NCBI GenBank assembly: GCA_963924565.1
Contig: OZ004608.1
Coordinates: 7,750,001-7,814,000, forward strand
DNA length: 64,000 nucleotides
Reading direction: 5' to 3'
Source of the DNA: Ascidiella aspersa
Taxonomy: Eukaryota
In this document: in pieces, positions 5,143 through 36,200 of the stretch
Position numbering within the stretch: the first letter of the stretch is position 1
How the letters are laid out: each line of letters starts with the position of its first letter
Notes under the pieces: model-generated
Told to the model about the DNA's origin: nothing
The model's input: the letters and a program-made list of their open reading frames with translations, nothing else
Databases searched by the model: none
Translations under genes and position numbers: made by a program

Positions 5143-5862
5143 TCACTTTCTCCAGCGAAAATGGGCATAAGCACGCTTTGACTCGGCCAGTTTGTGCAAT
5201 TCTTTCTTTTTCTGCACGAGGTCGCCTTGGTTCTGATAAGCACGTAAAATCTCCTGACTCAATCTCAGGCCAGCCTTGGTGTTTGGCTTGCCGCTCGCCG
5301 AACCGGCACGCGTCACCTTCCGCTTGATGTGGGCAAGGAGCCAGCTGGAGGCGATAAAGAACTGATCCTTGTCGTCGAGCGGGTACGGGATCTGGTACAC
5401 CTGTGAGCCCCGTCTCAAAGACTCCACATTCACAACCGGCTTGATGTTTCCCAGTCCTTCATGGAAAACCTTAAGTGGATTTATTTCGATGTGCGGTTTT
5501 TCCTCCTCGCTGGCGGCATGGTACTTCTTGAGTTGGGCAAACTTGATGAGGGTCAGCGTATCTTTCAAGATGGCGTCAGCCGCTACGCCCTTGCCCTGCT
5601 TTAAGATTAGCTTGCGGAACTTGTGGAGAGTTTCGTCGTAGAAGCTAGAGTACGTGTGATCATTGGGCGCCGCCTTGATCTTTTTTAATGACATTGTATC
5701 ACCGTCCGCTGGGGGGTTGTCTTTATAGTATTTGGGGTCTGCAATTGGGTCAATCCATTCAGGCCCGTACATTGAATAGTTTTTCACAAACAAAACGGCC
5801 CCGAAATGTCTGTTGGAACCGCAGAAGGAGCCTAACCTCAAGGGCAATTTTACGATTGACAT
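5143..5862 (-). CDS. MRPS7: Mitochondrial ribosomal protein uS7m, intronless CDS, ~239 aa
   Basis: S7 motifs (LILKQGK, KPVVNVESLRRGSQVYQIPYPL, VQKKKELHKLAESKRAYAHFRW) plus the mitochondrial-type N-terminus (YGPEWIDP, KIKAAP...SSFYD). First ATG is 5862 (MSIVKLPLRLG), preceded by TTTTTTAAG; the track start at 5928 is not an ATG. Confidence 0.93.
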   Translation of the reverse strand: MSIVKLPLRLGSFCGSNRHFGAVLFVKNYSMYGPEWIDPIADPKYYKDNPPADGDTMSLKKIKAAPNDHTYSSFYDETLHKFRKLILKQGKGVAADAILKDTLTLIKFAQLKKYHAASEEEKPHIEINPLKVFHEGLGNIKPVVNVESLRRGSQVYQIPYPLDDKDQFFIASSWLLAHIKRKVTRAGSASGKPNTKAGLRLSQEILRAYQNQGDLVQKKKELHKLAESKRAYAHFRWRK

Positions 5863-6373
5863 TATCTTAAAAAATGGAAAAAATATTTTTATAATACTAG
5901 GATTGAGTAGGTTTGCTTGTAAACACATTTTTAATCAAACCTAACACAATTTTATTGTGGTAGCATGTTTTCTCTGGCCCGTCTGCGTTTCATGACCGGT
6001 ACACACGCAATAGTTTTTCTAAAAAAATTTGTGTGCACATCTAATTTGGTATATATTGCACACTTAAATTTTGACAAAATTAGGCTAAATTGTGGTAGAT
6101 TTTTAACCTAATGTATTGAGAAAAACATAATTGCAAACCTGCACACACAAGATCTTGGCGTCATGGCGTGAATCGCCATGAAATGTAAACTGGCTCTGGG
6201 GTGCAGCCCGAAATTTACATGTGTGACACTCAAAGATATCTTATGCCTATGATAAGGCATGTCATATACAAGCATTTAATGGCACTTTACACTGAGATCT
6301 TGGATGTGCAACTAAATTTTTGGGTGTGCAATTTTGTTTTTTACTCACCTTAGGTTGGCACAGGAAAACATTG

Positions 6374-8987: not shown

Positions 8988-11900
8988 TTAAAGCAATTTA
9001 AATTGAACTATCCTAAGATTGTTTTCAAATATTTCAACTTGGCACCGACGCTCGTTTTCATCACTGAAATCTAAAGCTTTCTGAACACTTTCGATCGCTT
9101 GTTTGTAATAAGTTGCCGCAAGTTTATATTTCGACATATTGTCGTATGTTGTCCCGATGTTGTTTAAACAGTGACAGTAAACTTTGTACTTGGCTGCGTC
9201 GGCACCAAAACGATTTTCCATCAAGGCGATCGCTTCTTGCAATGTAACTTCCCTTTGCTTAGACTCTTTGATGTAATCTTGACTCACACCAATCGCATTT
9301 AAGCACAACGCTTCGTACACACACCTCGCATTCCCATCGACGTTCCTCACCTTTTGCACCTCCCGACGTACGTCACGCATTAATGGGATCACGTGGTCTG
9401 CGACTGTTTGTTTTGCGCTGACGTCAGATGAAGCAAGTTCTTTATTAACTACTTCCATTCCATCAACACATCTCTTAATTCCCTCCAAGGCGTGTTCAGT
9501 GTTGACTTTGTTTGTGTAAAGCGATGCCGCGACGCGGTAGAAGGTGGCAGATTGTAAATAGTGCTTCTTCGTGCGCAGCTTAAACGCCGACGCTTCCAGC
9601 TCGTCGGCGGATAAATATTCCATCTCGCGGATAAACTTCACCAACTTCTCGACTTGGTCAAGTGCTTTGCCGAATTGCAGCATCTTGAAATGCTGCAAAC
9701 ACGCCTTCAGTAGTTTGGCTGATTTAGCGCCTTTAAAGTCAAATAAATGAGTCATTATTTATAATTCAATTATTACCTTAATTAAACGACTTTTCGAAAT
9801 TCGTTTTGATATGCGTTTAGTCACAGCGGTATTTTAACCAACGACAAACCATTCCTAATGGATATAACGTCGTTATTATTTGGACTGAAATTAAACTTGA
9901 AACACTTCTTGAAGCTTTAGGTTACAAATTTGGAAAATAAGGCTTTTCAATTAAATATCAGTTATACAATTTTTAGATTTTGTACACCCATCATCTTGTG
10001 TGCATCTATGTAATGTTAGGCTACTTACTGTGTTGTTTAAATGTCGCTCGAAGCTCTTCTCCACTCATAGCTGTCTCAATTAATTCGCTATCTAAATAAA
10101 ACAGGAAAATTGACATATGAACGTATCAGCAGATGGACAGAATTCAACCACCTAACTGATATTATATTTATTTATTAATAATAGCTTAAAAAATCCCAAA
10201 ACATATCTTATAGACTTATAGAGTAATTGTGTTTGAACAGTTTTTTTCTTCGACAAGCCAAACTTTTAAATTGATTATAAAATGGAACTTTTCTATCCTG
10301 TTGTAAATATTTTATTGATATGAAAAATAATTAATTATTGTAAATTGGACAAAACAATTAAATCAGGGCAAGGAGAATATTTTTGGTATTGAAAATTACT
10401 TAGGGCAGGACAGCAGCGTTTGGAGTCTAATCTGGCTCAGGACCTGGCAAATTCTTTTTTGCTTTTTAAAACTTTACTCGTTTTAATTAATGCACTTCAC
10501 CTCACTTTATTTGTTCTGTTGCCTTTCTACTTTTTCCACTGATGACCACTAATTGTTTTCAGCCTTTGTTTTAATCAGGGCTGGGGAGCCGGAGCCGGAG
10601 CTGGAGCCCGGAGCCCGGAGCTAAGCATTTTCTCTGGAGCCAGAGCCGGAGCCGGAGCCATTGTTATTATTTTTGTGGAGCTGGAGCCGGAGCCGGAGCC
10701 ATTTTTATTATTTTTGTGGAGCTGGAGCCGGAGCCGGAGCCATTTTTATTATTTTTGTGGAGCTGGAGCCATTTTTCAATTTGTGGTGCTAAAGCTAAGA
10801 AATTATATTTTGTTCCATCTCCAACGTTAATTAGCCAAAAGCAATTTTTAAAACTTGCCATTGAATAAGTGAGAGTCATTGGGTGTGTGTTTGATGGCTC
10901 CGGAGCTGGAGCCGGAGCCAAAGGATTGAGTTTTACGACTCCGGAGCTGGAGCCGGAGCCATTTAATAATTGCCTGATGGCTCCGGAGCTGGAGCCGGAG
11001 CTAATGCTATTTTACGGTGGCTCCCCAGCCCTGGTTTTAATGGTGAACGACAATTCCTTGCTGAAACTAAAAAACCCGGCAGTCTGGGTTTGAGCGTGGT
11101 GTGGAACAGTGTAGCTGTTTTTGTGAGCAAGCGAGCCGAAGTACGCGCTAGCCGTTCTGCTACAGATTAAGCTTAGTGGTGGCGTTCGCGCCACACAGCC
11201 ATTCTGATAATATTAAATACTAATGTTTAAATTGGGTGTGGCAGCCGGTCAGTGACAGGCCGTCAGTGAATAAGATAAGCACTTGTTCGTAAGCAATTAG
11301 GCTGCAGTCGTAAATCGTAAAAGGAAATGTAAATCGTAAAGGCTGAAGCAAGTATGGTGTGGAACGATTTTCACCTATAATTCAAGGATATATAACACCA
11401 TTATGAGTGGATTGCTGTGTCCGCCATCTTTTAAATGATTGGATTGGTGTAATATCGGGTTTTGCGGTCGGAGTCGGACGCTAAACTCGAGATTCGATTT
11501 TATTTTTTCCAAGCTTGGTCGATCTTAATTTGTTTTAAACTCACTCTGCCGTACTAACTGGGGATAATTCTGAATGAATGTTAATAGAATACAACGGCTT
11601 AGTTTATCGACACTAGACAAGTTAAACAAGCCTTATAATTGTAAAAATCGTGCAAGCATCAGAAATAACCTGCACCACGTTGTGCTTGTTGGTCAGACTG
11701 CTGCGATGTACCAGGTGTGCTGTGCAGTTCGTCGTAAGTGGTTTGGTTAGAAGCCTCAAATTCTAGCCACATAAAGTTCAAGTTATTCGAACATTTTTAC
11801 ATGGAATGATTAATTATTGTCAGTCTGTGTACACGTATTAGGCCTGAGTTCCTATGTTGTTTGATTCCGTATTTAAAAAAAAATAATTATTTAGAATACC

Positions 11901-14805
11901 TTAATATTAGCTGACTAATGCGATAAATTATTTTTTAAATGAAACGATAAATAAATCGTTTTTTACACCAATATCTCACAACATTTATTTGTTTGTTTTT
12001 CTGTGGCGGATCACTTTTATTAAAACTTTGCTCACTTAAACCATGGTTTAAGCATCAGTTATATTATTAAAAGTAGGCCATATCTAATTACCTCCAGATC
12101 TTTCAGAAAGCGAGTGCACAAACGACTTGCCTCCTTGTATTAATAATGTACTAAGGGGGCGGAACTGGCCATCGCTGAATGACGTCTCCCCAATCTTCAT
12201 CTGCTTGACCGCGTCCGCAACCTGATATAGGATGACGTCAGATTTTATTTTGGAAAGTCTGGCTTCTAATTGATTTCTGACGTCAATCATAGTGGGGCGA
12301 TCTTTAGGGTTTTGTTTCCAGCACTTGGTCATAACATCCACAAGAAGATCGACAACTTCTCTGTCTTGCTGGTTGAGAGCGGACTTGAGTTTGTTGACGT
12401 CATCCCATAGAGGCCGTTCTCCTTTTTTTACCGCCTCAACCAATGCACCGTGACCAAGTGTGTATGGGTTCTTTCGGGTCAGCGCCATGTGAACCACAAG
12501 AGCGTAACTGTAGACGTCCATCTCTTTTGTTGGTGGCAATTGTAGACTATCAAGGCGCTCAGGAGCGGTATACGCTGGTGTGTATTGAACTTCTGTGGTT
12601 GTATCGGCTGATGAAATTGTTAGAGATGTGGTGTAGCTGCGAAATTCAGCGGCGCCGAAGTCAGCTATCTTGCACTGGAGGTTTCTGTCGAAGAGAATGT
12701 TTTCCGGTTTGATGTCTCCATGGACCAGACGCTTTTCACTGCTGAAGTTGTGGATGAAGGCCAGTCCTCTCGCAACATCAGTTAGCATTCGCAAGCGCAA
12801 TGGGATGGGAATATTAGCATCTTCGTCCATGAAGACATCTGTCAGGTTTCCATTTGGCATCAGCTCCGCCACGATTGCCATTGCGTTCTGCCATTTGGTC
12901 CACCCGTGCACACGGATGATGTTCTGGTGGTTTGCCCTTTGTATCGCTTCCATTTCTTTCTTTAATCTACAAATACAGGGAAACACGTATGGAATTTTTT
13001 TTTTAATTTTGCAATGACTTATGTCTCAGTAAAGTCATTTGAAAAAAAACTTAAGTCCAAGTCAAGCCACAGTCCCAGTCAAATCCCAAACAAGTCACTA
13101 TGAGAGCAAGTCAATTTCAAGTGAACTGTTAAACTATTAAAGCTGGTAAACTCGTCCATTTATGAACAACAACTCAACTAAAAAATAACACCAACGCAAA
13201 ATACTACAATCAAATTCTTTAACGTGCAAAACTAGAGATAATTTTACTGAAAAACGCTCAATGTAATCCCAAGATATTGGACAAAAAAGACTTTATTTTT
13301 CCTAAAGACTTAGATCAAGTCAAGTAATTTTGGTCAAAATAATTAAGTCAAGTCAACTTATTTATCAACAGTGACTTAAGTGCACTTAAGTCATTATAAC
13401 ACTGGGTGTTACTATCGCATCCCCATGTCAATTAAAACGTGTTCTTAAAGTTGTAAGGGTCATTTTCGCAACATTTTCTAACGTGTGAAGCTTGACAGTC
13501 GCTTAAGCTGGAGTTATGAGGTCAAGATGGAAAATATATTAGGTTTTATCACCTCAGTCTACCACCAGGTGTACGCATATTTTACACAAACTACAGATAT
13601 TGGCATTTAAAGTAAGTGGTATAATTGATTCAACGCACCCCCCAATTCGCGTAATGATCAGAACAAAAATATTTTACTTTGTTCTGTGCTTGCAAAATGC
13701 TGTATCATCTTGATTGTGCTTTATTTCTCGCACGATATTTTTTGTTTAGTGACAATGTCATTTTAACAAAGACAGGATTTAGGCCGCATTTGTTTTGAAC
13801 ACGCGTAATAGGAAATAAAATGTTTTAAGTATGAAAGAAATTGACTCATGAAAACTAATTGTCAGCGTGTTTGCAGTACAAGATACAACTTTTGCAAAAT
13901 TAGAGTTCCCTGATTACTTAAACTCGTGACGAGCAGGTGACTTGAGTATGGGTCTTACTTTTTTTCCAGTAGATCCTTTTGTTTTCGGCTGCCAGTGACT
14001 GGAAAGCACTTGAGAGCCACCAAGCCAATCGAGTGATGTCTTGCGAGTCGAATTACTCCGAATGAACCCGATCCCAACTCGCCCTCTTCGCCTTCAAGGA
14101 TTTCAACCTCTTCGCAGGGAATTAAGCAGAACTGTTTCGGAAGTGAAAATAGATTATGATTTGACTCTCATAGTGACTGTGTATTGTCAAAAGAGTAGTA
14201 TGTAGTGTCGAAATAGTTTAGATAAAATCGTAAAGATAATTAACGACCCATAAGCCAATATATAAGCGGTTTCTTCACTGGGATAAATTTTGATGGTCGA
14301 GAGGAGTAGGATGGTTAATTCTAAAGGATTTTTGTTGTGAATAAAACCATGTGACGTCACACGACAAGGTTTTTAAAAGGGATTTATCTCTGTTTACAAT
14401 TGGTATTGCCTTCTGGCTTCGGTTCAATAAAAAAAACCTAAAAAATGATTGCGATGAGTACCGATAACTAAATCCACATAAAAGCAATTCATAAATATCG
14501 AAGTTTCGTAATTTAGAGAATTATAAGGTGAGAAAGTAGGGTGCTTAGATTTGCGTCAAGGATTTGAAATAGCTCTATACAACGCCCGAAAATAACGATT
14601 TTCTAACCACGTGGGGTCATAAAAGAGGAGAAAAAAAAAACTCTTGACACGTTAGACGATATTCCTGGTAAACATTTCTTTACCTTAAAGGCGAAATGTA
14701 ATTCTGAAATTATGGAAAATTGTATTTTTTTGCTAAAAATCGATTTCCTTGTATATATTATAATAAAGGCATTGTTACTGTACTTACTAGGGAGTTGTCC
14801 GCCAT
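8988..14805 (-). CDS. RIPK/IRAK-like non-RD Ser/Thr kinase with C-terminal TPR-like domain, paralog A, 6 exons, ~654 aa
   Basis: Exons 14805-14788 (MADNSL, least certain), 14131-13959, 12966-12092, 11762-11670, 10091-10029, 9730-8988; GT-AG, one continuous frame. Kinase motifs GSGSFG, VALK, HGDIKPEN, DFG, APE, DVYSY, CW...P.DRP. TPR-like CLNNIGTTYDNMSKYKLAATYYKQAI. Exon sizes 173/875/93/63/743 match paralog B exactly. Confidence 0.85.
10576..11033. mobile_element. hAT-type MITE rich in GGAGCC/GGAGCT subterminal repeats
   Basis: TIR CAGGGCTGGGGAGCC / GGCTCCCCAGCCCTG; exact TSD GTTTTAAT at 10568-10575 and 11034-11041. Confidence 0.9.
13008..13404. mobile_element. Degenerate MITE with AAGTC subrepeats
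   Basis: Repeated CAAGTC motifs; right end AAGTCATTATAACACTG pairs imperfectly with left CAATGACTT; no clear TSD. Confidence 0.45.
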
Positions 14806-15771
14806 TTTGTAAGCAATGCAAACTTGGTTACTTCAGTTGTTTGCTTATTGTGCTGTAGTCAATTAGGCTAGCTTGTTGCTAACTAAACAGGCAAATACCT
14901 TAATCAAAGTTCACTATCCACAATTATTTCAGAGCAACTAAACCTATTTACATAAACTTTAATTACAATTGGGCTAATATGCTATGTCGAGCCGTAAAAA
15001 TTGTAGCACTGCAATAACCTCAACGAGCATACAAGGTCGTATAAAGCCTATGTGAGTGATTTGAATTAAACCAAGTAGGCTGCGCTTTGTTCAAAGACTG
15101 GTCGAGTTACGCAGCCTATGCTGTATAGGTTACACAGACAATAAGGCTTTTCCCAAATGCTCCAGCAGGTGTAAAGTTTCAAACTCTTTGTAGGAATCTT
15201 CGTTTGATTTTTCTTACATAGGCTTAGGCCTTAACCGACTTACCTTTTATCATAAACGATAGTTAATGTTAGTAGGATAATATAGCCCCAGTGCATATTA
15301 TTGGACTACTGTACATTCAACCGTCATTTCATTAATTTTTTAACGCCTTTTTGATAAAATGTGAAACCTAATCAAGGACGTGCAGTCAGGGGGGCAGGTG
15401 AGGCACTCTGGAACCCCAAAACGGCCGTAGTTGCAGCCTAGTAGCTCATTAGTTTTTCTAGTAAAAGCTGAAAATATGAATTAGTGTTTATTTAATATGC
15501 GGCCCTCCTGTAAGCATTACATTTCCTTACTGGCCCTTGTTTAAAAAAGGTTGCCCACAACTGATTTACAGTAAGATTCTCTCACGCTATGGGCTTTTCG
15601 TCACTATTGGACAGGGGCGGATTCGGGGTTTTAATTTGGGGGGACATAAATTTTTCAGAGATTAATATAACAATTACCCTTTAAAAATGTTCTCGAGTAA
15701 AGTCTTAATAGATATAGTTGAAAACCAGTCTAATCGTATAAGGGTAGATTGCCTTTAAAACAGCGTTTATC

Positions 15772-16023
15772 AAATATAGTTTATGGCGCCCTAGTTTAAC
15801 AAAATTTGTATCGAAAAGGCCCGATTTTAATAAATTTTGTATCCTAAAGGCCAGATTTGAATAAATTTGTATCCTAAAGGCCCACTTTTAACAAATGGTG
15901 TAGACTAAAGGCCCCCTTTAAAAACATTTCGTAGCCTAAAGACCCACTTTCAACAAATGATGTACGGTAGCCTAAGAGACAACTTTTAACAAATGTTGTA
16001 GCCTAAAGGCTTAGTTTAACAAA
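15772..16023. repeat. Minisatellite, ~31-bp unit, ~8 diverged copies, in the spacer between the kinase-TPR genes
   Basis: Units resembling AAATTTGTATCCTAAAGGCCCACTTTTAAC. Confidence 0.8.
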
Positions 16024-16524
16024 CCTTTTTCATACCGCTGCCAGCTTTCATCAAAAGCTTAATTTTGGGGGTAAAAATATTTTTTTTGGCAAATAAATTT
16101 TCGAGGTCAACAAGCTGCGTCATTCAACAGATTTTTTTGCCCGTTTAAAATTAAATGGAAGAAGTTATAATTTATCCATATTCATAAGTCTAATTAACAA
16201 ACGTTAATTAAAAAAAATCATAATAGGGTAGCGGCTTTATGCCCAGTATCATATTCGTGTTAAACATTAAACTTGTTTTCAGAAGCCTCCGTGTTTGTCA
16301 ACTAACAAAAACTCAGATATAGTTTGAACTTTAATCTAGCTGAGTGGCTTAAGGCTGGTTCAACATGGCTTACAGCAATTGTAGAACTCAATATAGGTCG
16401 CCAAAAGCATATTCATCTTTATGAGTAAATGGGATTAGCTATCGAAATGATGACGTTTATTGAATATTTAAAGTAAATGTGTAATTTGTTTTAAGTTTTT
16501 TAAAACTAGTTAAAGCTGATAAAA

Positions 16525-19500
16525 ATGTCTTTGTCGATGGCTACAGCTGAACAAGTAAGTGTAGTGTGCATAACATTTTCCATGTGAAGTTAAGTTTAAA
16601 TAACCATAACTAAAAGTACAACTATATGATAAATTTAGTGTAATAAATAAATCAGATCGGTTCAATATTTTTGTTTTTATAGTGTTGAACAGCCTCGTGT
16701 TTTCTAACAGCAAATCTCAATAGAAAAGCCTTGATCACCCTTATATCTATAAATAAGTACCAAGCAACTATTTAGGAATAACACTTCTGATAATTCATAT
16801 GACAATAAATTATTTTGCAAAGCTGATTTAGGAATTTGCTATTTGAAATCAGACTCTTAGTGGGTCGCAAATCTTTGGAAAACAATAAACATCACCATTC
16901 ACCAGGTCAAAGTAAACTCTTAAAGGATAATTTAACAACATAAAAGACTTGATATATAAGGACTGTAAATCTAATTAAACCTAAACATTATTTTTATCGA
17001 ATGCTATATTCTCTATTGATCCAATATTTTTATTTTCCTATAGTTTCGTTCCATTCCTTGCAACGAGATTGAAATCCTCAATGGCGAAGAGGGCGAGTTG
17101 GGATCAGGTTCATTCGGAGTAGTTCGACTCGCAAGGCATCACTCGATTGGCTTGGTGGCTCTCAAGTGTTTTCCAGTCACTGGCAGCCGAAGGCAAAAGG
17201 TTCTGCTGGAAAAGAAGTAAGTGTCTAAGAGTAAGGAACCCCAGGCCCAAAAGTTTAAGTTGTTACTAAACGAAAAAAAAAACCACTATGTAACGTCATA
17301 GTTTTCTGTATAATATTAAATTCTAGGCTACTTCTCTCCGCAATTAAAACTTTATGTAAGAAAAACTTAACAACACTTTTTGGGGGTTTGGGGCACATGG
17401 CCATGCCCCCACACCCTTCTACCACAAAAAGAAAAACCATACTTTGTGCCTATGTTAACTAAGTAAGTACAAAAAATAATTATGTTTCTACCAAGTCTTA
17501 TTCCACTATATTAAAATCGTTTTAGCTTGGCTTAGTGCATCCCATCGCACCGTAAAAAAAAAGTTTGGGCAATTTAGAAGTTATTGTAGCGACTTTTTAG
17601 TTATGTTGAGAAACTTATGGTAGTATCCTATATTCGTTTAATAAGTAACAAAACCTAAAGTCGCTAAGTGAGTTCTATCCGGGTAAATATAAATTCTATT
17701 CTGTCCTTAGGAATAATTAAACACAACAAATGTATCTCTTTAGTATATATTGGGTTAAGTGTAAAAGATGAGCGTTAATAACTATCACAAACAAGAGTTT
17801 AGCATTACTATCGGCATTACACAAATCTACTTACAATATTATTGTCAAATCATAGCATGTTACTGCAATAACCACGAATCAAAACTGGCATATTAGAACC
17901 GAATCGTTCTCAAATATATAGCACAAAATGCAATACAATTTAGCAAAGTCATCACGCTAACAATTCTATTTTTGGCCAAGTTGGTAATTTAGAAACACAA
18001 AAAAAGTCCATCAGTCGTTCAAAGACCTGCAGACTAGGCAGCAGGAATTTGCTAAGATAAACAGTACACAGGACTGGGCGCCCACTTATCTCGCCCGAGT
18101 GGCCATCGCTTCGGGCAGCGAATGTCGCTCGCACGCACAGGCTACATTAACATTGTATGCTCTAAATAACCGAAATAAAGTCGTGGTAATGTACACCTGA
18201 AAAAGATAGAAAGGAACAGAAAATAACTACATTAATTTCGAAATGCAAAAACACTTTAGAATTATCGCCGTCTTAAAACCTATTTAACAATTCGTAATAA
18301 CTCCTAATGATAGTGGAACTTTGAGATTATAGCTTGTGACAATTAACAAATTTAGGTGTTTACTGTGTTGATAAACACGTAACACTTATAAGGCCTCTTT
18401 TGTGAATTAATTACATCGTTGAAGCTTTTGTATTGAAGACAACACTTGTCCAATCTACAACTAACAAAATAAAGGAACTGTGTGCTGTTTATAAGGTTAG
18501 GCTACATCATTTTGTCACGTTCAGATATAACTTAATGCCGACACATTTTGACACAACGTTGTGACGTCACGGTATGTGGTAACTTTGTGACGTTACTTTA
18601 TGACGAAACTTTGTGACAACATCTCTGAAAAAATTGTCCGCGCCTGATCACAGTGTATTTTTAATCGCACGAATTACGATAAAAACTTTGTATTCAGGAG
18701 ACATATAACGCATTAGGCACACAAAAATTATTGCACATTGCTTTGAGCCTGCAGCTAAAAGGCTGTTTAGAAATCACGCAAAATTTTCACGCGATGTTCA
18801 CAACAGTATACGTTTCCTTTATGTTGTTGCAATAGGCGTTAGACATAACACAATTTATTGCAAAAACAGTATAGAATTGTGCAAACCGGTAAAACATGAA
18901 TACCCCCGCGTATGTTACTTTGAAAAGGTGTAAGAAAAATACTTGTAAAAAGTTGGAAAATGTTTATCTTAGTTGAATTATAATTAAAGTATAGAGCTTT
19001 TATAGCTTCGCAAATATGCTAAGTTATAAAATACAGAAAAATGCCAGAGGTGCACGACAAATTTTAGCTCAATAGATGAGTTCCAAATCAGCAAAAAGTA
19101 AACGAAAGTTTTGCGCGACGATTTTTAAATTTTGACAAAACCTGTTTGGAGATGATTGGCATGGCGTGGTCTCACACCCGTGTACACAACGTAGGTCTCA
19201 ACAAACCGTACCATACTGTAGCCTACTAAATACATCCCATAGGACAATGTTCGACAACCCTTAGTCGCTGTCCAAAGTCGAACCCAGAGTGGTTTCAGCA
19301 CGCCAAAATAAAATTTGAATTTTGTTGTTAAAACGTGTAGTTTTAATAGGTTTGTTTTACCAACTGTTGAACAGGAGCGGGTTTAAAACGATTTTACCTC
19401 TAAAAATCGGTCTAATTAAATGTAAGAAGAGATGGTTTTAAAAGCGTTCAAAAACCAAAACGTGTTTGCTAGTTTACAATGTGAGTTTACAGGGTGTCAC

Positions 19501-22500
19501 CAATGTAAACAATGAAAGGATGAAATAACAATACTTTAAGAAACGCGAAAATTTTAATCGTTTTTCCAGATTCCAGTAATCAGTTAGTGTGTGGTGGTTG
19601 TTCACTTTTACACCGGTGGCCACCAAACTATGTTCCGCTGGATGATTGACACATCTTAATTCCGACTTCATATAAAACCCTTAAACAGAGTTTCGTAAAC
19701 CATGATGGCAGTTTGATTTGCTTGGGTCGGCGACTAAAGAAGTTCGCATGGTTAGATTTATTAACATTGGTTTTAAACAAGATTTCTACAATATTTGAAA
19801 AAATGCCGAAGCGAGACGAAGACTTAAATATGGAGCTGTTAAACTCTTAAGGTTAAGATCAAGTTTAAATGAAGTCCTATAAAGACGCATTGAGATATAT
19901 TAGGTTCAACAGCAGTTAAACTGCCTATTCCGCATATACAAATAATTCGATCGCCATTTTTCAAAGTGTCATTATCGTAAAACATCAAACTCCAGGTGGC
20001 AAAGTAAAGCACAAAAATAGTATAATGTTACATTTGTGGCACAAAATGGAGCCTTTTTCGTATCATTTGATCTACTGCAGTGGTCGGCAAACTGTGGGCC
20101 GCATAGCCATTTTTAGTGGGCCGCGAGTTACTTTAGAAAAGCTGAGTGTCATCAAGTAGTTGTGGGCCGCGAGATAGCCGAACGTTCATTGCACTGAATT
20201 TTAAAAGTTCTTCTTTCTAATAAATTTAATTGCCTAAGCGCGGTGCTGACCCGCGTGCCAAATGTGTCCATGAGAGTGCCTATAGCCCACTTCAACTATG
20301 TAAACGCAAATTGTTTTGCGCTTCGCGTGTTTTTTTTTCGTTTAATAGTATCTTTGCAATACATTATGACATGGCAGCGTCGGTATCAAGGCGCCGTGTA
20401 ATATTTCACCTTTTCTTGGTGTCAAGTTCTGTCAACAGCCTAACATGGGTGAGCTTGTACTCCCTGCGTAATGCAATTTCTACCAAAATATATCATGTAA
20501 TTTACACAAACATCGTGTAAACGTGTTTCGTGCGAAACTTTTTACGTGGCTGCGAGTGCCGCCAATTAGCTGTGGAGATTATATAGTGTTAAATTGTTTA
20601 TGCGTCGTGTGGCTCATAACTTTACAGTCGAATTTCTGGTAAATTAAACTATAAATGCCGTACCATCGAGCAATATTCGAATCCTTTTATGTGCAATATG
20701 CGTCACGTATCTTTTCATTTTTGCCAAAAACCAATAAACCCTATTTATTTATTTTTTTTATACGCGAATGTTGATTTTACATTCATATATGCGCACGAGT
20801 TCGTTCGAGAACAACAAAAGTGTTTCTCAGAACAATTGTTATATAACGTAACTTTGTGGCGTCATGCTAGTTTCTCCAACTCAAAACAAATATACTGGTT
20901 CCACTGCTGTTTTTGTAGTAGTTTTACCTAGTGGGCCTTCAATAGCTCTGAAAAGATTACTTTGGGCCGTGACAAAAAAAAGTTTGCCTACCACTGGCCT
21001 ACTGCATTAAATATTCTAGTGTTACTTTAAATGATCTTAGTGTGCTTTCTGTCGTACCACGATGAAAGAACTTAATAAACGTTTCAAACTTGCCAACATA
21101 ATCCTAGAAAACGCGGACAAATGTCGTTTAAAATTATTTTAATTACGATTTGGACGTGTTATTAGTGTCTACATAAGGACCTATTCTGAACATATTTCCT
21201 ATACGCGTTTGCCCGTATTTGCAGGTTAAAGAAAGAAATGGAAGCGATACAAAAGGCAAACCACCAGAACATCATTCGTGTGCACGGGTGGACCAAATGG
21301 CAGAACGCAATGGCAATTGTGGCAGAGTTGATGCCAAATGGAAACCTTAGAGATGTCTTCATGGACGAAGATGCTAATCTTCCCATCCCATTGCGCTTGC
21401 GAATGCTAACGGATGTTGCGAGAGGACTGGCCTTCATCCACAACTTCAGCAGTGAAAAGCGTCTGGTCCATGGCGACATCAAACCGGAAAACATACTCTT
21501 TGACAGAAACCTCCAGTGCAAGATAGCTGACTTCGGCGCCGCTGAATTTCGCAGCTACACGACAACTCTAACAGTTTCATCTGCCGCTGCAAGCACAGAA
21601 GCTCAATACACACCAGCGTATACCGCTCCTGAGCGCCTTGTTAGTCTACAGACGCCGCTTACTAAAGAGATGGACGTCTACAGTTACGCTCTCGTGGTTC
21701 ACATGGCGCTGACCCAAAAGAACCCATACACACTTGGTCACAGTGCATTGTTTACGGCGGTGAAAAAAGGAGAACGTCCTCTATTGGATGACGTCAACAA
21801 ACTCAAGTCCACTCTCAACCAGCAAGACAGAGAAATTGTCGATCTTCTGGTAGATGTTATGAAAAAGTGCTGGAAACAAAACCCCAAAGATCGCCCCACT
21901 ATGATTGACGTCCGAAATAAACTGGAAGCCAGACTTTCTAAAATAAAACCTGACGTAATTTTGCATCAGGTCGCTGACGCGGTCAAGCAGATAGACATTG
22001 GTGATACGTCATTCAGCGATGGCGAGTTCTCGCCTCTTAATACGTTAACTCTACAAGCAGGCCTAGTTGTCACACACTCGCCTTCTGAAAGACCTGGAGG
22101 TAACTCAATATGACTTAATTCTGGTTTAGGTGAGCAAAGTTTGAATAAAAGTGGTGCGCTACAGAAAGGCAAACAAAACAAATGATCTGAGATAAGGGTG
22201 TAAAAAATGTTTTATTAGTCGTTTAAATTAATTAAATTACATTATTGCACTTTAGGTTCACACGTCAAGTTGTTTTTTAACCAAACCTACCATTTAGCTA
22301 TACTTAATAATTATTTATTAAAAATGAATTCCTGGCTAATGGAATTGTGTGTAAAATCTAACAAACTTTGGAACTCAGGCCTAAAACGTGTACACAGACA
22401 GATAATATAATTTTTTTTTTGTTTTATGTTTCTAGAAGTTGAGGCTTCTAACCAAATCACCTACGACGAACTGCACAGTACGCCTGGTACATCGCAGCAG

Positions 22501-25500
22501 TCTGACCAACAAGCACAACGTGGTGCAGGTTATTTCTGTTGTTGGCACGATGTTTACAATTATAAGGCTTAATTCAACTGTCTGGTGTTGTCAAACTATA
22601 AAGCATTTGTATTCTGTAAACATTCAATCATAATTATCCCCAGTTAGGACTGCAGAGAGGGTTTAATTTAAATCAAGTTCGACTCATAAAGTTCGAAATA
22701 AAATCGAATCTAGAGTTCATCACCCGACTACAACTCAAACTGCGAAACCCGATATACCACCAATCCACACAATTAAAACAGGGCGGACACAGCAATCCAC
22801 TCATAGTGGTGTTAAACAGGGTGGGCCGGAAAAACCTACCACATTTCAAATTGTCACTGTACCAAAGCTTTAGCAGTACGACAGGAGGTTGAATTGAAAT
22901 ATTGCAGCAAATAACTTACGATTTGTGAAGTAAATAATGTATTGTGCAAATTTTTACAATTTTGTATCTGTATGTAAAATGGCCTGGACTGGCGAACACC
23001 GTGCATTTATTGTGGAAGATTTCGTTAGAAATGGTGAATCTGAGACTCGAGGGCGCCATCTACAGGATGTAAAACATAAATAGATCAAATAGTAACCTTT
23101 TGACTTTCGAGATGAGACAATACATGTTTTAATTGCTTAAAAATTTTGTCTCTTTTTCCCACTTTCAAATGTGATAAGTTTTTCTGCCGCACCCTTCACC
23201 AGTCCGCGCCATTTTACATACAGATACAAATGCACAATACATTATTTACTTATAAAAACTAAAACCTGAAACACAAATGGTAAGTCGTTTTTTTTCTTTT
23301 TTTTTTCTTTTTTATGGTAAGTCCTTTGCTGCAATATTTCAATTAGACCTCTTGTCAAACTGCTACAGCTTTGGTACAGTAACAATGTGAAATGTGGTAG
23401 GTTTTTCTGGCCCACTCTGTATAGCATTGTAGGTAAAAACGTTCCACCCCATTCTATTCCGCGTTTACGATTTACATTACCCTTTACGATTTACATTCCC
23501 CTTTACGATTTTAGGACGTTCTTAATGGTTACAAACTTGCTACAGCGCAAAGCACGACGGAATTCAGCCAAATAAAACGACTTTGTCAGGTCCTGAGCCG
23601 GATCAGAATCCCAAATCTGCAGTCCTGTCCGAAGTATTTTTTTAAAACAAAAATATTATCCTTGCCCTGATTAAATTGTTTTGACTAATTTATAATAACT
23701 AATTATTTTTTATATCAATAGAATATTTACAACAGGATAGAAAAGTTCAATTTTATAATCAATTTAAAAGTTTGGCTTGTCGAAGAAAAAAAACTGTTCA
23801 AACACAATTACTCTATAAGTCTATAAGATATGTTTTGGGATTTTTTAAGCTATTCCTATTAATAAATCAAATATCAGTAGTCACTTGGTTTAAGAAAATA
23901 ACATATTGCATTTTTATCAACACGTCGTTTTCGTTTTTAACGTAACCTACAATTTAGCTATGCTAAATAATTATTTACCTAAAATTGGATTCCTGGCTAA
24001 TGGAATTCTGTGTCAAATTTAACAAACTTTGGAACTCAGGCCTTAAACGTGTACACAGACAGACAATAATTAATCATTCCATGCAAATTGTTCGAATTAC
24101 TTTAATTTTATGTTGTTTTATGTTGCTAGAAGTTGCAGCTTCTAACCCAACAACTTACGACAAACTGCACAGTACGCCTGGTACATCGCAGCAGTCTGAG
24201 CAACAAGTACAACCTGGTGCAGGTTATTTCTGTTGTTTACACGATGTTTACAATTATAAGGCGTGTTTCACTTGCCGAACGTCATTCTACTCCGATTTCT
24301 AAAGTTCCCCTAAGCAACAATTTATTTCTGATTTCAATACACACATCCTGATTTTGGGAATATCTTTACAACAAAGTAGGAATACTTCTTTTTGTTACTA
24401 GCTTTGAAAGTTTGACAGTGGCACGTCGCGGAAAAAAAAAGTTTCTCGAAACTCTCCAAACACAATTATCTAAACTTATCTTTATCGTCTTTTAAGTTAC
24501 TTTGGTCATTGAATTCTGGCCACCTGCTGTTAGGTTCGCATGCCAATTTTCCGGTTTTATTTATAGATAGCGATTTCATTGAGACAGCCATTAGTGGAGA
24601 AGAGCTTCGAGCGACGTTTAAACAACACAGTGAGTAGCCTAACATTACATAGATGTACACAAGATGATGGGTGTACAAAATACTAAAAAAATAGATAACG
24701 GATATTTAATTGAAAAGCCTTATTTTTCAATTTTGTAGCCTAAAGCTTCAAGAAGTGTTAACTATTCAATATCAGTTTAAATAATAACGGTGTTATATCC
24801 ATTAAGAATCAATTTCTTTTCGGTTATAATGCCGCTGTTAACAAACAACCAAAGATTTTATGAATACATTTAAATAACATAATTAATTTAAAAATTAATG
24901 TAAAGACTCTGTATTTATTATTTTAAAGGTAGTGACTTAGAAAAACTACTGAAGGCGTGTTTGCAACATTTCAAGATGCTGCGATTCGGCAAAGCACGTG
25001 ACCAAGTCGAGAGGTTGCTGAAGTTGATCCGCGAGCGCAAATATTCATCCGCCGTCGAGCTGGAAGTGTTGGCGTTTAAGCTGCGCAAGAAGAAGCACTA
25101 CTTACAATCTGCCGCCTTCTACCGCGTCGCGGCATCGCTCCACACAAACAAAGTCAACACTGAACACGCCTTGGAAGGAATTAAGAGATGTGTTGAAGGA
25201 ATGACAATCGTAAATAAAGAACTTGCTGCGTGTGACGTCAGCGCAAAACAAGCCATTACCAAACACGTGATCCCACTAATGCGTGACGTAAGGCATGAGG
25301 TGCAAAAGGTGAGAAACGTCGATGGGGATGCGAGCTGTGTGTACGAAGCTTGGTGCCTGCATTTGATTGGCATGAGTCAATATTACATCAAGGAGTGGAA
25401 GCATTGGGAAGTTACATTGCAAGAAACGATCGCCTTGATGGAAAATCGTTTAGGTACTGACTCCGCCAAGTACAAAGTTTACTGTTACTTTTTGCACAAC

Positions 25501-25671
25501 ATCGGGATAGCTTACGAAAATATGTCGAAGTATGAACTTGCGGCAACTTATTACAAGAAAGCAATCGAAAGGTATAAAAAATGTTCGGAATACACGGATG
25601 AGGATGAAAGACAGCAGTATATAGAGTTTAGTGAAAGCGTCCTTAGGGGCGTTCAAAACAAGTTACTCTGA
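16525..25671 (+). CDS. RIPK/IRAK-like non-RD Ser/Thr kinase with C-terminal TPR-like domain, paralog B, 6-7 exons, ~658-689 aa
   Basis: Exons 16525-16554 (MSLSMATAEQ, least certain), 17044-17216, 21225-22099, 22436-22528, 24130-24222 (duplicate of the previous exon), 24567-24629, 24929-25671; GT-AG, frame continuous; same motifs as paralog A. Confidence 0.85.
20078..20996. mobile_element. Non-autonomous hAT (Charlie-like) element in intron 2 of paralog B
   Basis: TIR CAGTGGTCGGCAAACT / AGTTTGCCTACCACTG; imperfect TSD ATCTACTG / GCCTACTG; subterminal GGGCCGC motifs. Confidence 0.8.
22817..23419. mobile_element. Internally deleted Tc1/mariner-type element plus an inverted second left end
   Basis: TIR CAGGGTGGGCCGGAAAAACCTACCACATTTC at 22817; inverted copies end at 23195 and 23419 (followed by TA). 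Relic transposase ends MAWTGEHRAFIVEDFVRNGES and GRHLQDVK. The homologous intron of paralog A (~11395) is an empty TA site. Confidence 0.75.
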
Positions 25672-30200: not shown

Positions 30201-33200
30201 GTACAAAACGCCCCTTGTGCATTCTGAAACTTTGTGCGCGTCTCGGCATTCTTACAAAAGTTTACTTCTTCAACCTCTCGAAAAAAACGTGACCTAATTC
30301 TTTAAGGCCAAGGTGAAATCATGAGTATGACCTTACCCCGATCGCCAACTGGACAATTAAAGCATTCTAACTGAAACGACTGTACGGTATCATCTAAAAA
30401 CTTTATAGCCTTTGGAATCAAGTAATTAGGTTGCCTGTTTCCCGAACGCCAAATCGATTTATAACCCAGCAAACCAGCATCATGGTTAACGTGGGCTCAG
30501 TATGTTCTCCTTTTATTTCCTGAAACAGTCCTCATATAATTTCCTAAAGAAAATCCGCCAAGCAATTGTATTTTCTCATTTCATATCGTAAAAGAAGTCC
30601 GCCAAACATTCCGAATGTCCTCCATTTTTATAAAACAAAGACGCGTGTAACTTGGCCATCGCCCTAATAACCCGCCCTCTTTTCGTATTTTACCAGGATT
30701 GCGCGCCACACATCGCCTCTATTACTTCCGTGACGACGCGTCGACTTTTCAAGAAGCCACAGCCTCGTGTTGCCAAGCCGGCGGAAAGCTGGCCATCTTC
30801 AGGAACGACGCCGAGTTTAATCGGATCCAGTGCGTAGCCACCCCCCGGCAAGGCGGACTACAGATGCACAGAGTGCAGTCCTCTTATATCGGTATGAGGT
30901 AGACTTATGCGCGTTTTGCTTTCGGTTCAACAAAAAAAAAATAAAAAAAACATAGTTTGATAAAACCAATGCCTTGTCGCGTTTTCCTTAAAGGTATTTA
31001 GACTTATTTAAGTTTCATCTTTGTTGGTCCTACAATAGCAGGTCTCATTAGCTAATTGTTTTATGACGTCACAATGTCATGCTGGCCCTGGTGCACGCGA
31101 ACAAAAGTGTTTTTTAGGGTCCGTGTTAAAAAAATAGTTAAATAACCCCAGCACTAAACAATCTTTGAACATTTGTTATAAATACGACTTTCTATGTTTT
31201 TCTTGGGCCTGAATCAACTTGGCCAGACGATTGAGAACGTTTTTGCGTTGCTTTTTCTTAACAGCAAACACTCTGGTTGATCGTAACAACCACGACAGCA
31301 CAGCAGACCATCAGCACAGCAAAATGTGCTTCGCGGTAACCACAGCGAGAAAGTGGCAAAACGTGGAATGCAACGTACCTCGGACATTTGTCTGCTACAT
31401 AGACGGTAAGCAGAAACTATGGTTTGAGCTTAATGTCATACAAACTTAATAACATAAATAACATTGCAGATGTTGAATTAAACATTGAAAATAGACAGCT
31501 GTGTCGATTCGGTGGAGAACAAAAGTTAAACTGCTATGTGTTGTGTGTATTAAATCTGCAGGCAAAACAGGTTAGTTTTTAATTTCAGCACTCTGGTCTT
31601 CTTTCAGTTTCTTCAGCGGGTTTCAACGAAACAACGAATTGCATCAGTAAAGCAGTCGTAGCTAAGACAACAGGAACAACAAGCACAATAACAACCAACA
31701 CGGCGACTCAAGAAACAACGACATTATCAACTACGGCAGCGGTAACCCCAAGTACAATAATAGCAAAAACAACAACAATAGCTACCACTATAGGTAAACA
31801 ACCAACGAAACCAACATCACAATTCACAGCAACAGAGAAAACAACAATAACAGCAGAGTCATCGCAAACCGCAACGGATTCATCCCCAGCTGCAACAGAA
31901 ACAGCATCCATATTGAAAAATACAGTTACAGCAGTCACCTCTGTAACAACAGAAACAGCAGCAGCAGCAGTAATCAGTTCCCAAAAAGATGGTCGGAAAA
32001 CGAAAGGATCACAGACAAGGACATATTCGAAGACAGCATCCACAGAGGAAACATTCAGTACATCTACATCTCCTACAAAGACAAACCTTGAATTAGGAGC
32101 GACAACTCTACCTTCGTCTAGCACCAAATCGCATTGGTCGACAACGGGTGCTACACAGGATGCTCTAGCTTTAACCGATAACCAGTTTCCAGTTGCGCTC
32201 GGCTTGACGCAATCGCTAGCGCCAAACACAACTGCAAAACCGCAGCCTACGAGCAAATCAGTTGCGACACGAATACACACAGAGGAAACATCGCAGACAG
32301 CGCATGCTTCTGCAACCGCTCATCGTACTACGACAGCAGCAATTAAAACAGCAGGGATGTCCACACATCAAGCGACCAGCACTGTACTCAAGTTTACCGG
32401 CGAAACAAAATCTTATAAGGGCCAAAAGATGGGAAGACTAATTCAAATGACTAGTTCAACTAGTACAGAAATATCGTCAACAACAACAACAAGTCCAACA
32501 ACTGCCAGTACCATTAACACACGTCGATTAGAAACACGTGTCAAACCGCAATGGACAATAGCAACACCAACAATCAAACATACAACTGCAAAACCTCCAG
32601 AAAACATAGCAACACCATCAACACGAACAAAAATTGTCAGAAAAGCAACAGCAAAAACAATTACATCAGCAACAACACAAAGAAATATTGAAAGAGCAAC
32701 AACATCAATAACAGCAACAAAAATGGCAAAAGGAACAACGCCAGAAAAAATTGAATTAGTAACACGTCCTGAAATGACCACAGCAATAAAACCAACCAAC
32801 ATGAAAACAGAAACAACATCAAGAAAACCAACGACAGCACAAATAACAGAATTGCCAAAACCTTTGCCATTAGTCGAAACACCAACGCCTGAAACAAAAA
32901 CCACAATTCAGCAGCCTCAACTAACAAAATCATTCAGAGAATTGTACCAGACCTTACCAACAACAAAAACTTCCACCAACACAAAATCAAAGATGGTGTC
33001 CGAAGTGCCAGCAACTGAAGTCGAAACGACAACGGAAAAACTTGTTGTTGTCCACTTTCGATTCCCGGCAAATGAAGGGAATGTCGACGTGGAGCCGGTT
33101 ATCCAAGAAACCGAACGGGCCGAGACTCGAGCGGAATTTCGGTTTCTATCGCCCGGCCATTCCGACGAGGTTTACGATTTTGAGGAGCCGCTGCCTTCCA

Positions 33201-36200
33201 ATCAATTTACAACACAACTTCCGACCAACATAACCGAAAGTAAGCACATGTGCATATGCAAAACTTAAGCTAATATCGAGGTTTTAGTGCTCGTGGTAGG
33301 TGGCTACTGATTAATTTAATGATTAAACTCTTGGTAAGACGTAATTAGAATATCAAAGCTCATACAGAAGTCATGTTGATAAAATGAATAAAGAGTTATT
33401 CGAAACGTTCAAAATAATACCTACTTCTGTATGGGCTTTGATATTCGTATTACGTCTTACTACAACCTCCAACCATGCTCCAAAACTCTTGGTAAATTTC
33501 AGACTTCTTAGTGACTTAGTTCCTACACAGCGATTTCATAGTAATTGTTGGTTGGATAAAAAGTTACATGTTTTACAAAGTCCGAAGTAAATTCCACTGT
33601 TGATAGGTATGTGGTAGACTTTAATGTAAAACTAAAGCTACTTATTGCAGCGTATATCCGGATGGTTTAATTATATGTAGAACAGACATCCAATCATCTA
33701 TGAGCTTTAATATTATTTCAATTTTAAACTAATTGGAATTTCTTGAAGCCAAAGTTTCTTAAGACGTTTAGTTTATATTGTTTAAAAAACGTACCTTTCA
33801 ATGTAGCAATCAGTATGTTGATTCGAAAACATTGGCTGAAACGAATTAATGTATACGATATCGGATCGGCACCGAAACCATTTTGGTGTCACACAAATAC
33901 CGATACTACCACTTAGCATCGGATAATGGCTCCGATCCGATATTATCGCACATTCCTTCTGCGAACTCATCCCTACTATATACTACGAAATATTAACGTT
34001 TGATAGTAGGTGCGAAAATACCCGTTAAGCTTTAACACAACTGTTTTTGTTTTAGATTTATCGAGTATCACATACAACTCCACCACGACGCCCGACAATA
34101 GTAATAGTATTAATAGCAGCAGCATTGCCAAAGGCAACCACAATAACATTACCAGCAGCTACAGCAACATTACCAGCAGCAACATTACCAATACCAACAG
34201 TAGCATTACCAACAACAAGAGGAACAACAACAACAGGAGCAGAAGCAATGATAGGGATGACACGCCTTCCACTCCGCTAATCTGGACAGCGAGCGCTAAC
34301 GACAGCTCCCCAGCTCTCAAGGAGATTTGCGACACGTCCCTGAGTCTCTGCGCGGCGCCAAAGCTTACAAAACTCTCGCTAATCACGATACAAGATCAGC
34401 AGGCGAGCGAAGATAAAGGAAGCGACCAATCCAAAGAGGATCTCCTCAAAAGGCCGTTGGTACGTTCTGGCGGCTCAGTTGTGCTTGGAGTTCAAGCTCC
34501 GGCAAACGAGACTGTCTACGTTGCTTTTACCAACGTTACACGACAACAGGCCAGCGTCTTTGCCAACGAGCCGCCGCCGCCTGTTGATAACCAAGTCCAA
34601 GTGGAAGCGCCTATCCCGGAGCTGATCACAGTCTCAACTGGATCCTCGGTGCCAGTTAACTACACGATCCGGGTGGAAAGAAACTCTGTCGACTTAGGAT
34701 CGCTCCTGGCAGGTAAAGGAAGGCGCGAGTGGGCTCCGGCCAATGTGAAAGTCACAGAGGCGAAAATGGTGTGCGTCTATTTGGACAAGAAGACAAAGAA
34801 GTAAGTAAACGGATGCCCTCTTGCTTTTAACGTTTTATTTGGCGTTTTAACGTATAATTTAGCGTGCAGCATGTTGGTTAATCAGCTTCCAAAACCCCCC
34901 TGCACTAGTACCAAGTGTTTTTATCTCATACATACTCTATTCTTTCAGAGATTTGCGGTTTTAAAGAATCTTTAGAAATGCAATAGTTAAAAGTGTAGAA
35001 CCGTTGCCAACCAGTGTGGTAACAAGTTTTGTTAAGTTATTTTGTTGTATTTGCGTGAAAAGGAAAACAAATTCTACTTAAAACTGTAGATAGTTTGATG
35101 TTTTTGCAACTCTAGGATTGTTTTTCATTTATTAAATAATGTAATTTAATCCATTATGAAATGTTTGCAATTAAAATATCTCCAGTTATCATTAAGGTGA
35201 AACATCAACGTTGGGATCAACAAACTATTTGCCAAAAACACATATGCAACGAAAAAGTTCAGGCGACACAAACCTTTTTCTTTCAAGATCACGTTTTTTG
35301 CAACAAGGTTTTATAGATGTATGGTGAACCAGCCATTATGTCATGAAACCACTGCACAAATTGTTGTTAACGTTATAAACAACCCGATCGCAGATTTTCG
35401 AGAGACGGCCTAAAAGCGATCAACCCCACGTCGAAGAACTACTACTGTGTCTCCAACCACACCACGATATTTGCCGCCATGCTGACCTTGAAGACGGTCC
35501 ACATTTCTGAGGGTGTTAAGGTATACGGCTGCTTGTCATTGGGTAATCATGCAAGGGACAGATGTTTTTCTTTGGACCATGTCCAGTCTGGAACATCTAG
35601 ACACATACTAGTAAAACTAAATTTTTGAATAATACATATGGGTGTAAAAATGTTTAGAGAATTGTCCAGTGATTTTTAGTACTTCGAGCCCTCAATAGGG
35701 TATTATTCATATAAGGGGGTCTCAATATAATTCATTCCAAGCACTGGAGTTCAGGATAAGAGGACAGTACACTCGTGTAGTTACACCGCAGTGCTACAAG
35801 AGTTTTGCAAATCAGCATTAGGGACGAATTCAAATTTAAATTCATCCCTAATTTACTCAAGGCGGAAAAATACGCAAAACAAATTAAAGGACTGTTAATA
35901 TTTTAGTTAATCAGAACAGAGGCTTCGACGGAACTTGTGGTACATGTACTTTAAACACCAAAACTTCAACCGTTTTAATAGATCACCTAAAAATACATAA
36001 TTAATGGTGATCAAACTTCCAAGTTTTAATATGTTTCTTCCAAACTGTATTTAATATATTTAATGAGTCATATATTTGATGGTATACTACCTAGAGTTTA
36101 TTGTTGTTTTAGTCGGCCATTCGTCACGCATTTCAAGTTTAATCGATTTTAAAATAATGCTACGCGAGTATCGGATGAGTACAGGTACTAATACTTGCTT

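Follow-up and report, generated by a model that had tools for sequence, protein, structure and literature searches.

An ascidian gene family joining a RIPK-like kinase to a diversifying TPR-like domain, with a possible role as single-chain intracellular receptors

What do the four long open reading frames (ORFs) between positions 8,988 and 25,671 of a 64,000-nucleotide (nt) stretch of the Ascidiella aspersa genome encode, and what could their products do? The stretch, hereafter the window, covers positions 7,750,001 to 7,814,000 of contig OZ004608.1 and includes 256 N. An initial annotation had read the ORFs as two genes of a lineage-specific family, each fusing a non-RD kinase to a domain resembling tetratricopeptide repeats (TPR), and had proposed a one-chain cytosolic receptor. 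Using blastn of the two halves, we found that the four ORFs indeed belong to two paralogous six-exon genes, copies A and B, which are inverted and lie head to head (Table 1). The six exons of each gene add up to 1,965 nt, i.e. 654 codons plus a stop, and a local script found no internal stop. The exon sizes are the same in both copies, with GT-AG at every junction. The kinase exon ends at a GGAG/gtaa donor and is followed by 93-nt and 63-nt exons and a 743-nt TPR-like exon, the three junctions downstream of the kinase exon being all in phase 1 in both copies; this part of the initial annotation is exact, and all of its coordinates hold. The long kinase ORF begins at an acceptor and lacks the N-lobe. 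The glycine loop GSGSFG and the VAxK lysine lie outside this ORF, on a separate 173-nt exon that has no ATG and begins in phase 0, and upstream of it lies a first coding exon of six codons, followed by a gtaagt donor. Exon 1 was located from this ATG/donor pattern and from the end of a contig of run X3 (see below); no DNA similarity was detectable between the two halves of the spacer, where a conserved upstream exon was sought. Exons were searched and folded separately, and concatenated only to check the frame and to compute dN/dS. The proteins of copies A and B are 81% identical, with a dN/dS of 0.39 at a dS of 0.29, so that both copies are constrained; the kinase part taken alone gives 0.28 and the C-terminal domain, hereafter C-domain, 0.49.

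The kinase and TPR-like exons are joined in a transcript. Coverage in runs X1 and X2 is even across introns and exons, which makes these runs DNA-like; in run X3, read depth is concentrated on exons. Record 17 of X3, a spliced contig of 2,961 nt, aligns to 14131-13962, 12966-12092, 11762-11670 and 9729-8900, corresponding to exons 2, 3, 4 and 6 of copy A. Between exons 4 and 6 it carries 64 unaligned letters, the size of the 63-nt exon, and another 15 unaligned letters lie ahead of exon 2. As there are 0 mismatches across the kinase exon, the record derives from copy A and not from copy B, and since the genome has only two loci this similar, it represents spliced RNA of copy A rather than a retrocopy. 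Record 21 of the same run follows the genome without a break from 14890 and stops precisely at 14788, the predicted donor of exon 1. The exon boundaries used by record 17 are those of the initial annotation. The read alignment was made for copy A, and transcript support is thus limited to this copy. Among the apparent single-nucleotide polymorphisms in X1-X3, 13 of 17 match the letter of copy B, which indicates cross-laid pieces of the paralogue or gene conversion; they were therefore not used as polymorphism.

The translations contain every catalytic residue of a protein kinase: GSGSFG, VALK, the alphaC Glu, HGDIKPEN, DFG and APE. The catalytic loop reads HGD and is of the non-RD type. The loop, Asp and DFG given in the initial annotation are seen, together with the glycine loop and lysine that are now placed on the 173-nt exon. 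When compared with sequences in the Protein Data Bank (PDB) by phmmer, the kinase scored highest against RIPK1 (99.7 bits, 2e-27) and RIPK2 (92.8 bits, 3e-25), then against RIPK4 (82.0), RIPK3 (81.9), plant BRI1 (81.6) and IRAK4 (67.9); among solved structures, it is closer to RIPK1-4 than to other kinases. The next named matches of its Ciona homologue, described below, are fish RIPK2. A quick tree search on 26 rows, without IRAK, RIPK3/4 and MLKL rows, placed the window kinases, paralogues from contigs C3 and C9, Clavelina lepadiformis and the Ciona protein in one clade (SH-aLRT 93). Judged from its sequence, the kinase appears to be catalytically complete, non-RD and part of an ascidian-specific clade nearest to RIPK1-4. 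In the exons, in the Ciona protein P0190 (XP_002121803.3) and in protein P0164, Pfam returned only Pkinase and sub-threshold TPR models, with no death domain, CARD, RHIM or ankyrin repeats, and no IQIG/VQVG-type core was seen by eye in the tail. A NACHT/NB-ARC NTPase gave no match either, the 654 amino acids being wholly covered by kinase, linker and C-domain. About 40 residues past the kinase domain there is a P-L-x-x-F motif (window 21920-22099 and 12270-12092), which recurs in the window copies, the C3/C9 paralogues and the Clavelina and Ciona proteins, and which could be a docking motif.

The C-domain, encoded by the last exon, is TPR-like at the level of fold. Using a 47-row alignment, AlphaFold2 (AF2) folded the exon product of copy B into 11 helices with a pLDDT of 96.2 and a pTM of 0.91. 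Searching this model with Foldseek gave 44 PDB matches at E<=0.001, the best being the TPR domains of KLC1/2, LGN/Pins and sNASP (E 3e-5 to 1e-3, TM 0.45-0.58, probability 1.0). At the sequence level, Pfam TPR_1 reached 27.4 bits against a cut-off of 27.8 and is thus sub-threshold, with one repeat at residues 188-216 of the 246-residue exon product; by eye, this repeat has the consensus TPR residues at positions 4, 7, 8, 11, 20, 24 and 27. The model is best described as a 5.5-repeat TPR-like solenoid. The predicted protein of 654 residues would be cytosolic and consist of a short N-terminus, the kinase, a linker of ~110 residues and the solenoid; no signal peptide or membrane segment was found in it. 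The gene structure is thus fully in line with the proposed cytosolic, non-RD RIPK/IRAK-like kinase fused to a TPR domain.

How widespread is this fusion? In this genome, matches number at least 74 for the C-domain exon and at least 89 for the kinase exon, and they form at least 36 pairs of a kinase followed by a C-domain on the same strand, 1-14 kb apart. The C-domain follows 25 of the 26 best kinase matches, and most pairs lie in arrays on contig C3 (32.6-38.4 Mb). At least 38 further C-domain copies have no such kinase upstream. At C3:36.8-37.85 Mb there are two oppositely oriented kinase-TPR arrays with a spacing of ~50-90 kb, and two array copies on C3, L028 and L029, are identical over both compared exons; the duplication unit is therefore much larger than the gene. 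Beyond this genome, the C-domain had 518 matches in a library of 1.84 billion proteins, some of which are ordinary TPR proteins with several repeats whose match is confined to the single recognisable repeat. All 20 named holders that were looked up are ascidian (Ciona, Styela, Phallusia) and annotated as 'uncharacterized', and a kinase was found in 0 of 20 Pfam-scanned C-domain matches, long ones included. The fusion itself is present in Ciona intestinalis: XP_002121803.3 (P0190, LOC100178883, 739 residues) has the kinase and a homologous C-terminal region (hhalign 98.4%, E 1e-14). A search seeded with paralogues added kinases from Clavelina that belong to this clade, some of them ending in different tails, and the kinase clade and the TPR-like domain extend across ascidian orders (Ciona, Clavelina, Styela, Phallusia). 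As the kinase-TPR fusion also exists in Ciona, the architecture is old within ascidians, ascidian-wide and strongly expanded here, rather than unique to this genome; the term 'lineage-specific' in the initial annotation should be reworded accordingly. The fusion is already deposited in RefSeq, as the uncharacterized Ciona protein, yet it is undescribed, and we found no literature description of an ascidian RIPK/TPR or kinase-TPR family, or of Ciona LOC100178883.

We then compared selection on the two halves of the protein using paralogues of the C3 array, 14 genes for pairwise estimates and 11 of them for counts on trees, with gap-free protein alignments. The median pairwise Nei-Gojobori dN/dS was 0.23 for the kinase exon, with 0 of 87 pairs above 1, and 1.32 for the C-domain exon, with 71 of 88 pairs above 1. 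Parsimony counts on separate trees of the 11 paralogues gave 75 nonsynonymous and 91 synonymous changes for the kinase exon (omega 0.24), and 286 nonsynonymous and 53 synonymous changes for the C-domain exon (omega 1.45, binomial P = 0.006 versus neutrality). These changes are unevenly spread over the solenoid: helices 5, 7, 9 and 11 carry 1.7-3.4 nonsynonymous changes per residue and helices 6, 8 and 10 carry 0.4-0.9, and the hot codons on the former show an i, i+3/4 spacing between invariant residues. This pattern of alternate helices and invariant residues argues against simple decay. The C-domain exon is open in 13 of the 14 genes. In the Pfam register, where motif position 1 is residue 185, hot codons 186, 189, 193, 196, 197 and 218 correspond to TPR positions 2, 5, 9, 12, 13 and 34. 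Positions 2, 5, 9, 12, 13, 33 and 34 are the variable set of the concave face, and positions 2, 5, 6, 9, 12 and 13 are the ligand contacts of HOP (Magliery and Regan, PMC1261162), which places these six hot codons at concave-face, ligand-contact positions. The same pattern of selection on the concave face has been reported for the TPR arrays of fungal NLRs (PMC4986451). Copies A and B, which are ~32% identical to the C3 genes in the C-domain, serve as an independent replicate, as they differ from each other at 24 of the 39 hot codons and at 45 of the 207 remaining ones (odds ratio 5.8, P 2e-6). In summary, the TPR-like exon is under diversifying selection at concave-face positions, and the kinase is under purifying selection.

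Table 1. Exons of the two kinase-TPR genes and the spacer between them, in window coordinates
Feature	Position	Strand	Content and evidence
Copy A exon 1	14788..14890	-	5' untranslated region (UTR) and six codons; ATG 14805, donor after 14788; sole ATG in transcribed 5' stretch
Copy A exon 2, 173 nt	13959..14131	-	Kinase N-lobe, GSGSFG, VALK lysine
Copy A exon 3, 875 nt	12092..12966	-	Remaining kinase (HGDIKPEN, DFG, APE) and conserved post-kinase tail; Pfam Pkinase 1.9e-36
Copy A exon 4, 93 nt, phase 1-1	11670..11762	-	Ser/Thr/Gln-rich linker
Copy A exon 5, 63 nt, phase 1-1	10029..10091	-	Splice sites; 64-letter gap in X3 record 17 fits
Copy A exon 6, 743 nt	8988..9730	-	TPR-like C-terminal domain and stop; 3' UTR runs on below 8988
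Spacer between start codons, ~1.7 kb	14806..16536	.	Divergent promoters
Copy B first coding exon, six codons	16537..16554	+	Placed by analogy with copy A; ATG, gtaagt donor, phase 0
Copy B exon 2, 173 nt	17044..17216	+	Glycine loop, Lys; 90.5% identical to copy A exon 2
Copy B exon 3, 875 nt	21225..22099	+	Kinase domain and tail; Pfam Pkinase 1.3e-36
Copy B exon 4, 93 nt	22436..22528	+	Splice sites, frame
Copy B duplicated 93-nt exon	24128..24220	+	Acceptor, donor, frame intact
Copy B exon 5, 63 nt	24567..24629	+	Splice sites, frame
Copy B exon 6, 743 nt	24929..25671	+	TPR-like domain, 11 helices

Several other features of the locus were observed. Exon 4 of copy B is locally duplicated with its flanks (window 22320-22560 and 23985-24280), and copy A has a single one; as both 93-nt exons of copy B keep an acceptor, a donor and an open phase-1 frame, alternative or tandem use is possible. 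Repeats of very high copy number lie in introns 4 and 2 of copy A (window 10500-11100 and 12900-13500, respectively), where the depth of X1/X2 is thousands-fold above that of the flanks. The repeat at 10500-11100 has runs of a GGCTCC-type microsatellite, and nowhere else in the stretch were there reads from the RNA run X4. The neighbours in the window are a ribosomal protein S7-type ORF (5143-5928, minus strand), a secretin-family seven-transmembrane (7TM) receptor exon (60475-60984, plus strand) and an ORF of 451 residues (31913-33268, plus strand) that has no Pfam match and lies in a strongly skewed stretch.

The C-domain and the kinase also occur in other company. Ciona intestinalis XP_026692798.1 (P0001, 1277 residues) is made of four tandem C-domain copies (E 1e-96, four stretches) and has a faint match to the Pfam TPR-S 'sensor' repeats. 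The N-terminal parts of the long Styela C-domain proteins have no Pfam domain, and an Atlas feature search stayed below 0.8. In the Clavelina lepadiformis relative P0185, a kinase of the same clade carries a different tail, which is long, helical and non-homologous to the C-domain. A second Clavelina kinase of this clade, P0193, is partnered by an N-terminal fragment of the GTPase domain of a guanylate-binding protein, a combination that might stem from a gene-model fusion. Kinase-less C-domain genes of A. aspersa lie at C4:3.85-4.12 Mb (L032, L036-L055) and C1:0.3-0.6 Mb (L033), and carry an N-terminal module of ~150 residues, present in 25 copies, with a Gly/Ala-rich hydrophobic stretch. AF2 gives this module a ferredoxin-like alpha/beta fold (pLDDT 80). 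Pfam TRADD-like_N matched it below threshold in 4 of 11 members (best E 7.8e-4), and Foldseek lists TRADD-N weakly. Attempts to identify it further failed, as Foldseek and VIA gave generic ferredoxin-like matches and a profile search against PDB sequences gave no match. If the TRADD-like lead holds, and it is a lead only, the C-domain would be paired with two modules of the death-receptor pathway.

To what extent do these results support a receptor? The structural and family claims we regard as close to certain. The sequence patterns suggest a constant signalling kinase coupled to a diversifying recognition groove, and we lean, by a little, towards reading the family as receptors. Of the one-chain sensor-plus-effector receptor in the initial annotation, the parts that stand are the fusion, recurring at least 36 times, the diversifying selection on the concave face and the conserved kinase; that a ligand binds, that the kinase is activated and that immunity or cell death is the output is what we infer. 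Some of our own data weigh against the receptor. The omega values are counting estimates (parsimony, Nei-Gojobori) rather than codon-model likelihoods and carry no control for recombination or gene conversion, and within the window pair the omega of the C-domain is 0.49, not above 1. The concave-face assignment comes from the Pfam register of one repeat and from helix alternation, not from model coordinates. In the small tree of 26 rows, the ascidian clade forms an open polytomy with fish RIPK1, RIPK2 and MAP3K-like kinases. No exon was covered by reads of the RNA run X4, which at ~6% of the run read is uninformative; expression may be low or restricted. Finally, the groove could equally recruit varied host substrates.

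The last point leads to an alternative that we consider unlikely but worth serious weight, namely substrate-adaptor kinases whose variable TPR groove recruits endogenous substrates or scaffolds, in specialised signalling (development, gametes, stress) rather than as non-self receptors. The TPR domains nearest in structure, such as those of KLC and LGN, have endogenous cargo or partners as ligands, and the window neighbours (mitoribosomal S7, secretin-type 7TM exon) provide no immune context; however, an omega above 1 at ligand-contact positions in recent tandem duplicates would be unusual for conserved host partners and is typical of conflict or self/non-self systems (PMC4986451). An arms-race signature is also what a guard or decoy would show, in which the TPR-like domain baits effectors aimed at host TPR proteins and the kinase reports its modification, and such baits would fit with a C-domain that has at least 38 kinase-less occurrences and is also strung together in multi-copy proteins. 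Yet no candidate for the guarded host TPR protein was found, and among named proteins the C-domain is ascidian-only. We hold this to be a quite improbable explanation. We give slightly less credence still to allorecognition or self-incompatibility, with the groove reading polymorphic self markers, as ascidians do when colonies fuse or gametes show self-sterility. In fungi, allorecognition relies on NLRs whose TPR/ANK/WD repeats are hypervariable (PMC4986451), and the diversifying selection on a recognition face speaks for such a role, but the protein is cytosolic, without a signal peptide or membrane segment, and its diversity is seen between paralogues; allelic hyperpolymorphism was not seen in runs X1-X3, where most apparent variants are cross-laid copy-B letters. 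That the pair has no functional consequence, being duplicates in decay or a mis-joined gene model, is hardly credible. The absence of exon reads in X4 and the confinement of transcript support to copy A would agree with it, but the 654-codon ORFs are intact, the splice sites are conserved, dN/dS is 0.39 at a dS of 0.29, and the architecture recurs 36 times and is also found in Ciona; for copy A, which has a spliced contig, this explanation is largely refuted.

If the family does encode receptors, the groove would most likely serve to recognise a variety of proteins or peptides that come from pathogens or represent altered self. Ligand binding might switch on the attached kinase through relief of autoinhibition or through clustering, by analogy with the induced proximity of RIPK1/2, and one chain would do the job that NLR and RIPK2 share in vertebrates. 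In a three-chain docking (exon 2, exon 3 and the C-domain), placement of the C-domain on the kinase scored 0.00 versus a mark of 0.34, which speaks neither for such a contact nor against it. To our knowledge, ascidians have few classical cytosolic pattern receptors. A wider proposal, which we put forward tentatively and rate at somewhat less than an even chance, is that ascidians possess NOD-less single-chain intracellular immune receptors, with a RIPK-like kinase joined to a hypervariable TPR groove and tandem arrays of dozens as the repertoire. Sister genes, in which a different small module would stand at the N-terminus ahead of such a groove, may belong to the same NOD-less class. Tunicates are the closest invertebrate relatives of vertebrates, and their intracellular sensing of infection is poorly understood. 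If true, the kinase-TPR family would be a new chordate receptor design, with a RIPK-type kinase joined directly to an arms-race recognition domain, and RIPK-type kinases would couple to sensing without death-fold adaptors or NLRs. Ciona, which is genetically tractable, has a single clear homologue in LOC100178883, and the hypervariable positions name the residues to swap between paralogues.

Among known systems, the closest in the kinase are RIPK1 and RIPK2 (with RIPK3 and RIPK4) of the TKL group, the best kinase matches, which likewise have an N-terminal kinase, a linker and a C-terminal interaction module. RIPK1 and RIPK2 are also non-RD. Unlike in the RIPKs, the C-terminal module here is a TPR-like solenoid in place of a death domain, CARD, RHIM or ankyrin array, and the kinases form their own ascidian clade with dozens of copies and a hypervariable tail. 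Ciona LOC100178883 (XP_002121803.3) combines a kinase of the same clade with a homologous C-domain and differs in its length of 739 residues, its longer low-complexity linker and a kinase identity of ~36% to the Clavelina query relative. The order of kinase then TPR in a cytosolic protein is also that of plant BSK (RLCK-XII) and mycobacterial PknG. Both families are small and conserved and lack a hypervariable groove, and their kinase subfamilies differ; plant BRI1-type kinases score below the RIPKs. The TPR domains of KLC and LGN/Pins, the best structural matches of the C-domain, bind peptides in their concave groove, but identity is 12-17%, the rmsd is large and the helices here are longer (up to 25 residues), so that the likeness is one of fold class.

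Like NLR/STAND proteins, the family comprises many genes whose C-terminal repeats, the putative sensor, are under diversifying selection, and the logic is that of NLR, TRIM5 and fungal HET-type receptors, here without the NTPase switch. A close parallel in the repeats is found in fungal NLRs (Dyrka et al. 2014, PMC4986451), whose TPR arrays are of the KLC type and show positive selection on their concave face, and which form multigene families with combinatorial N-terminal effector domains that can include a protein kinase; the brown-algal NB-ARC-TPR genes (PMC3341825) are alike in their TPR repeats. The ascidian proteins differ from both in that their repeats are not near-identical internal copies, only one being recognisable by sequence, and in that no NACHT/NB-ARC lies between effector and repeats, in a family that belongs to an animal lineage.

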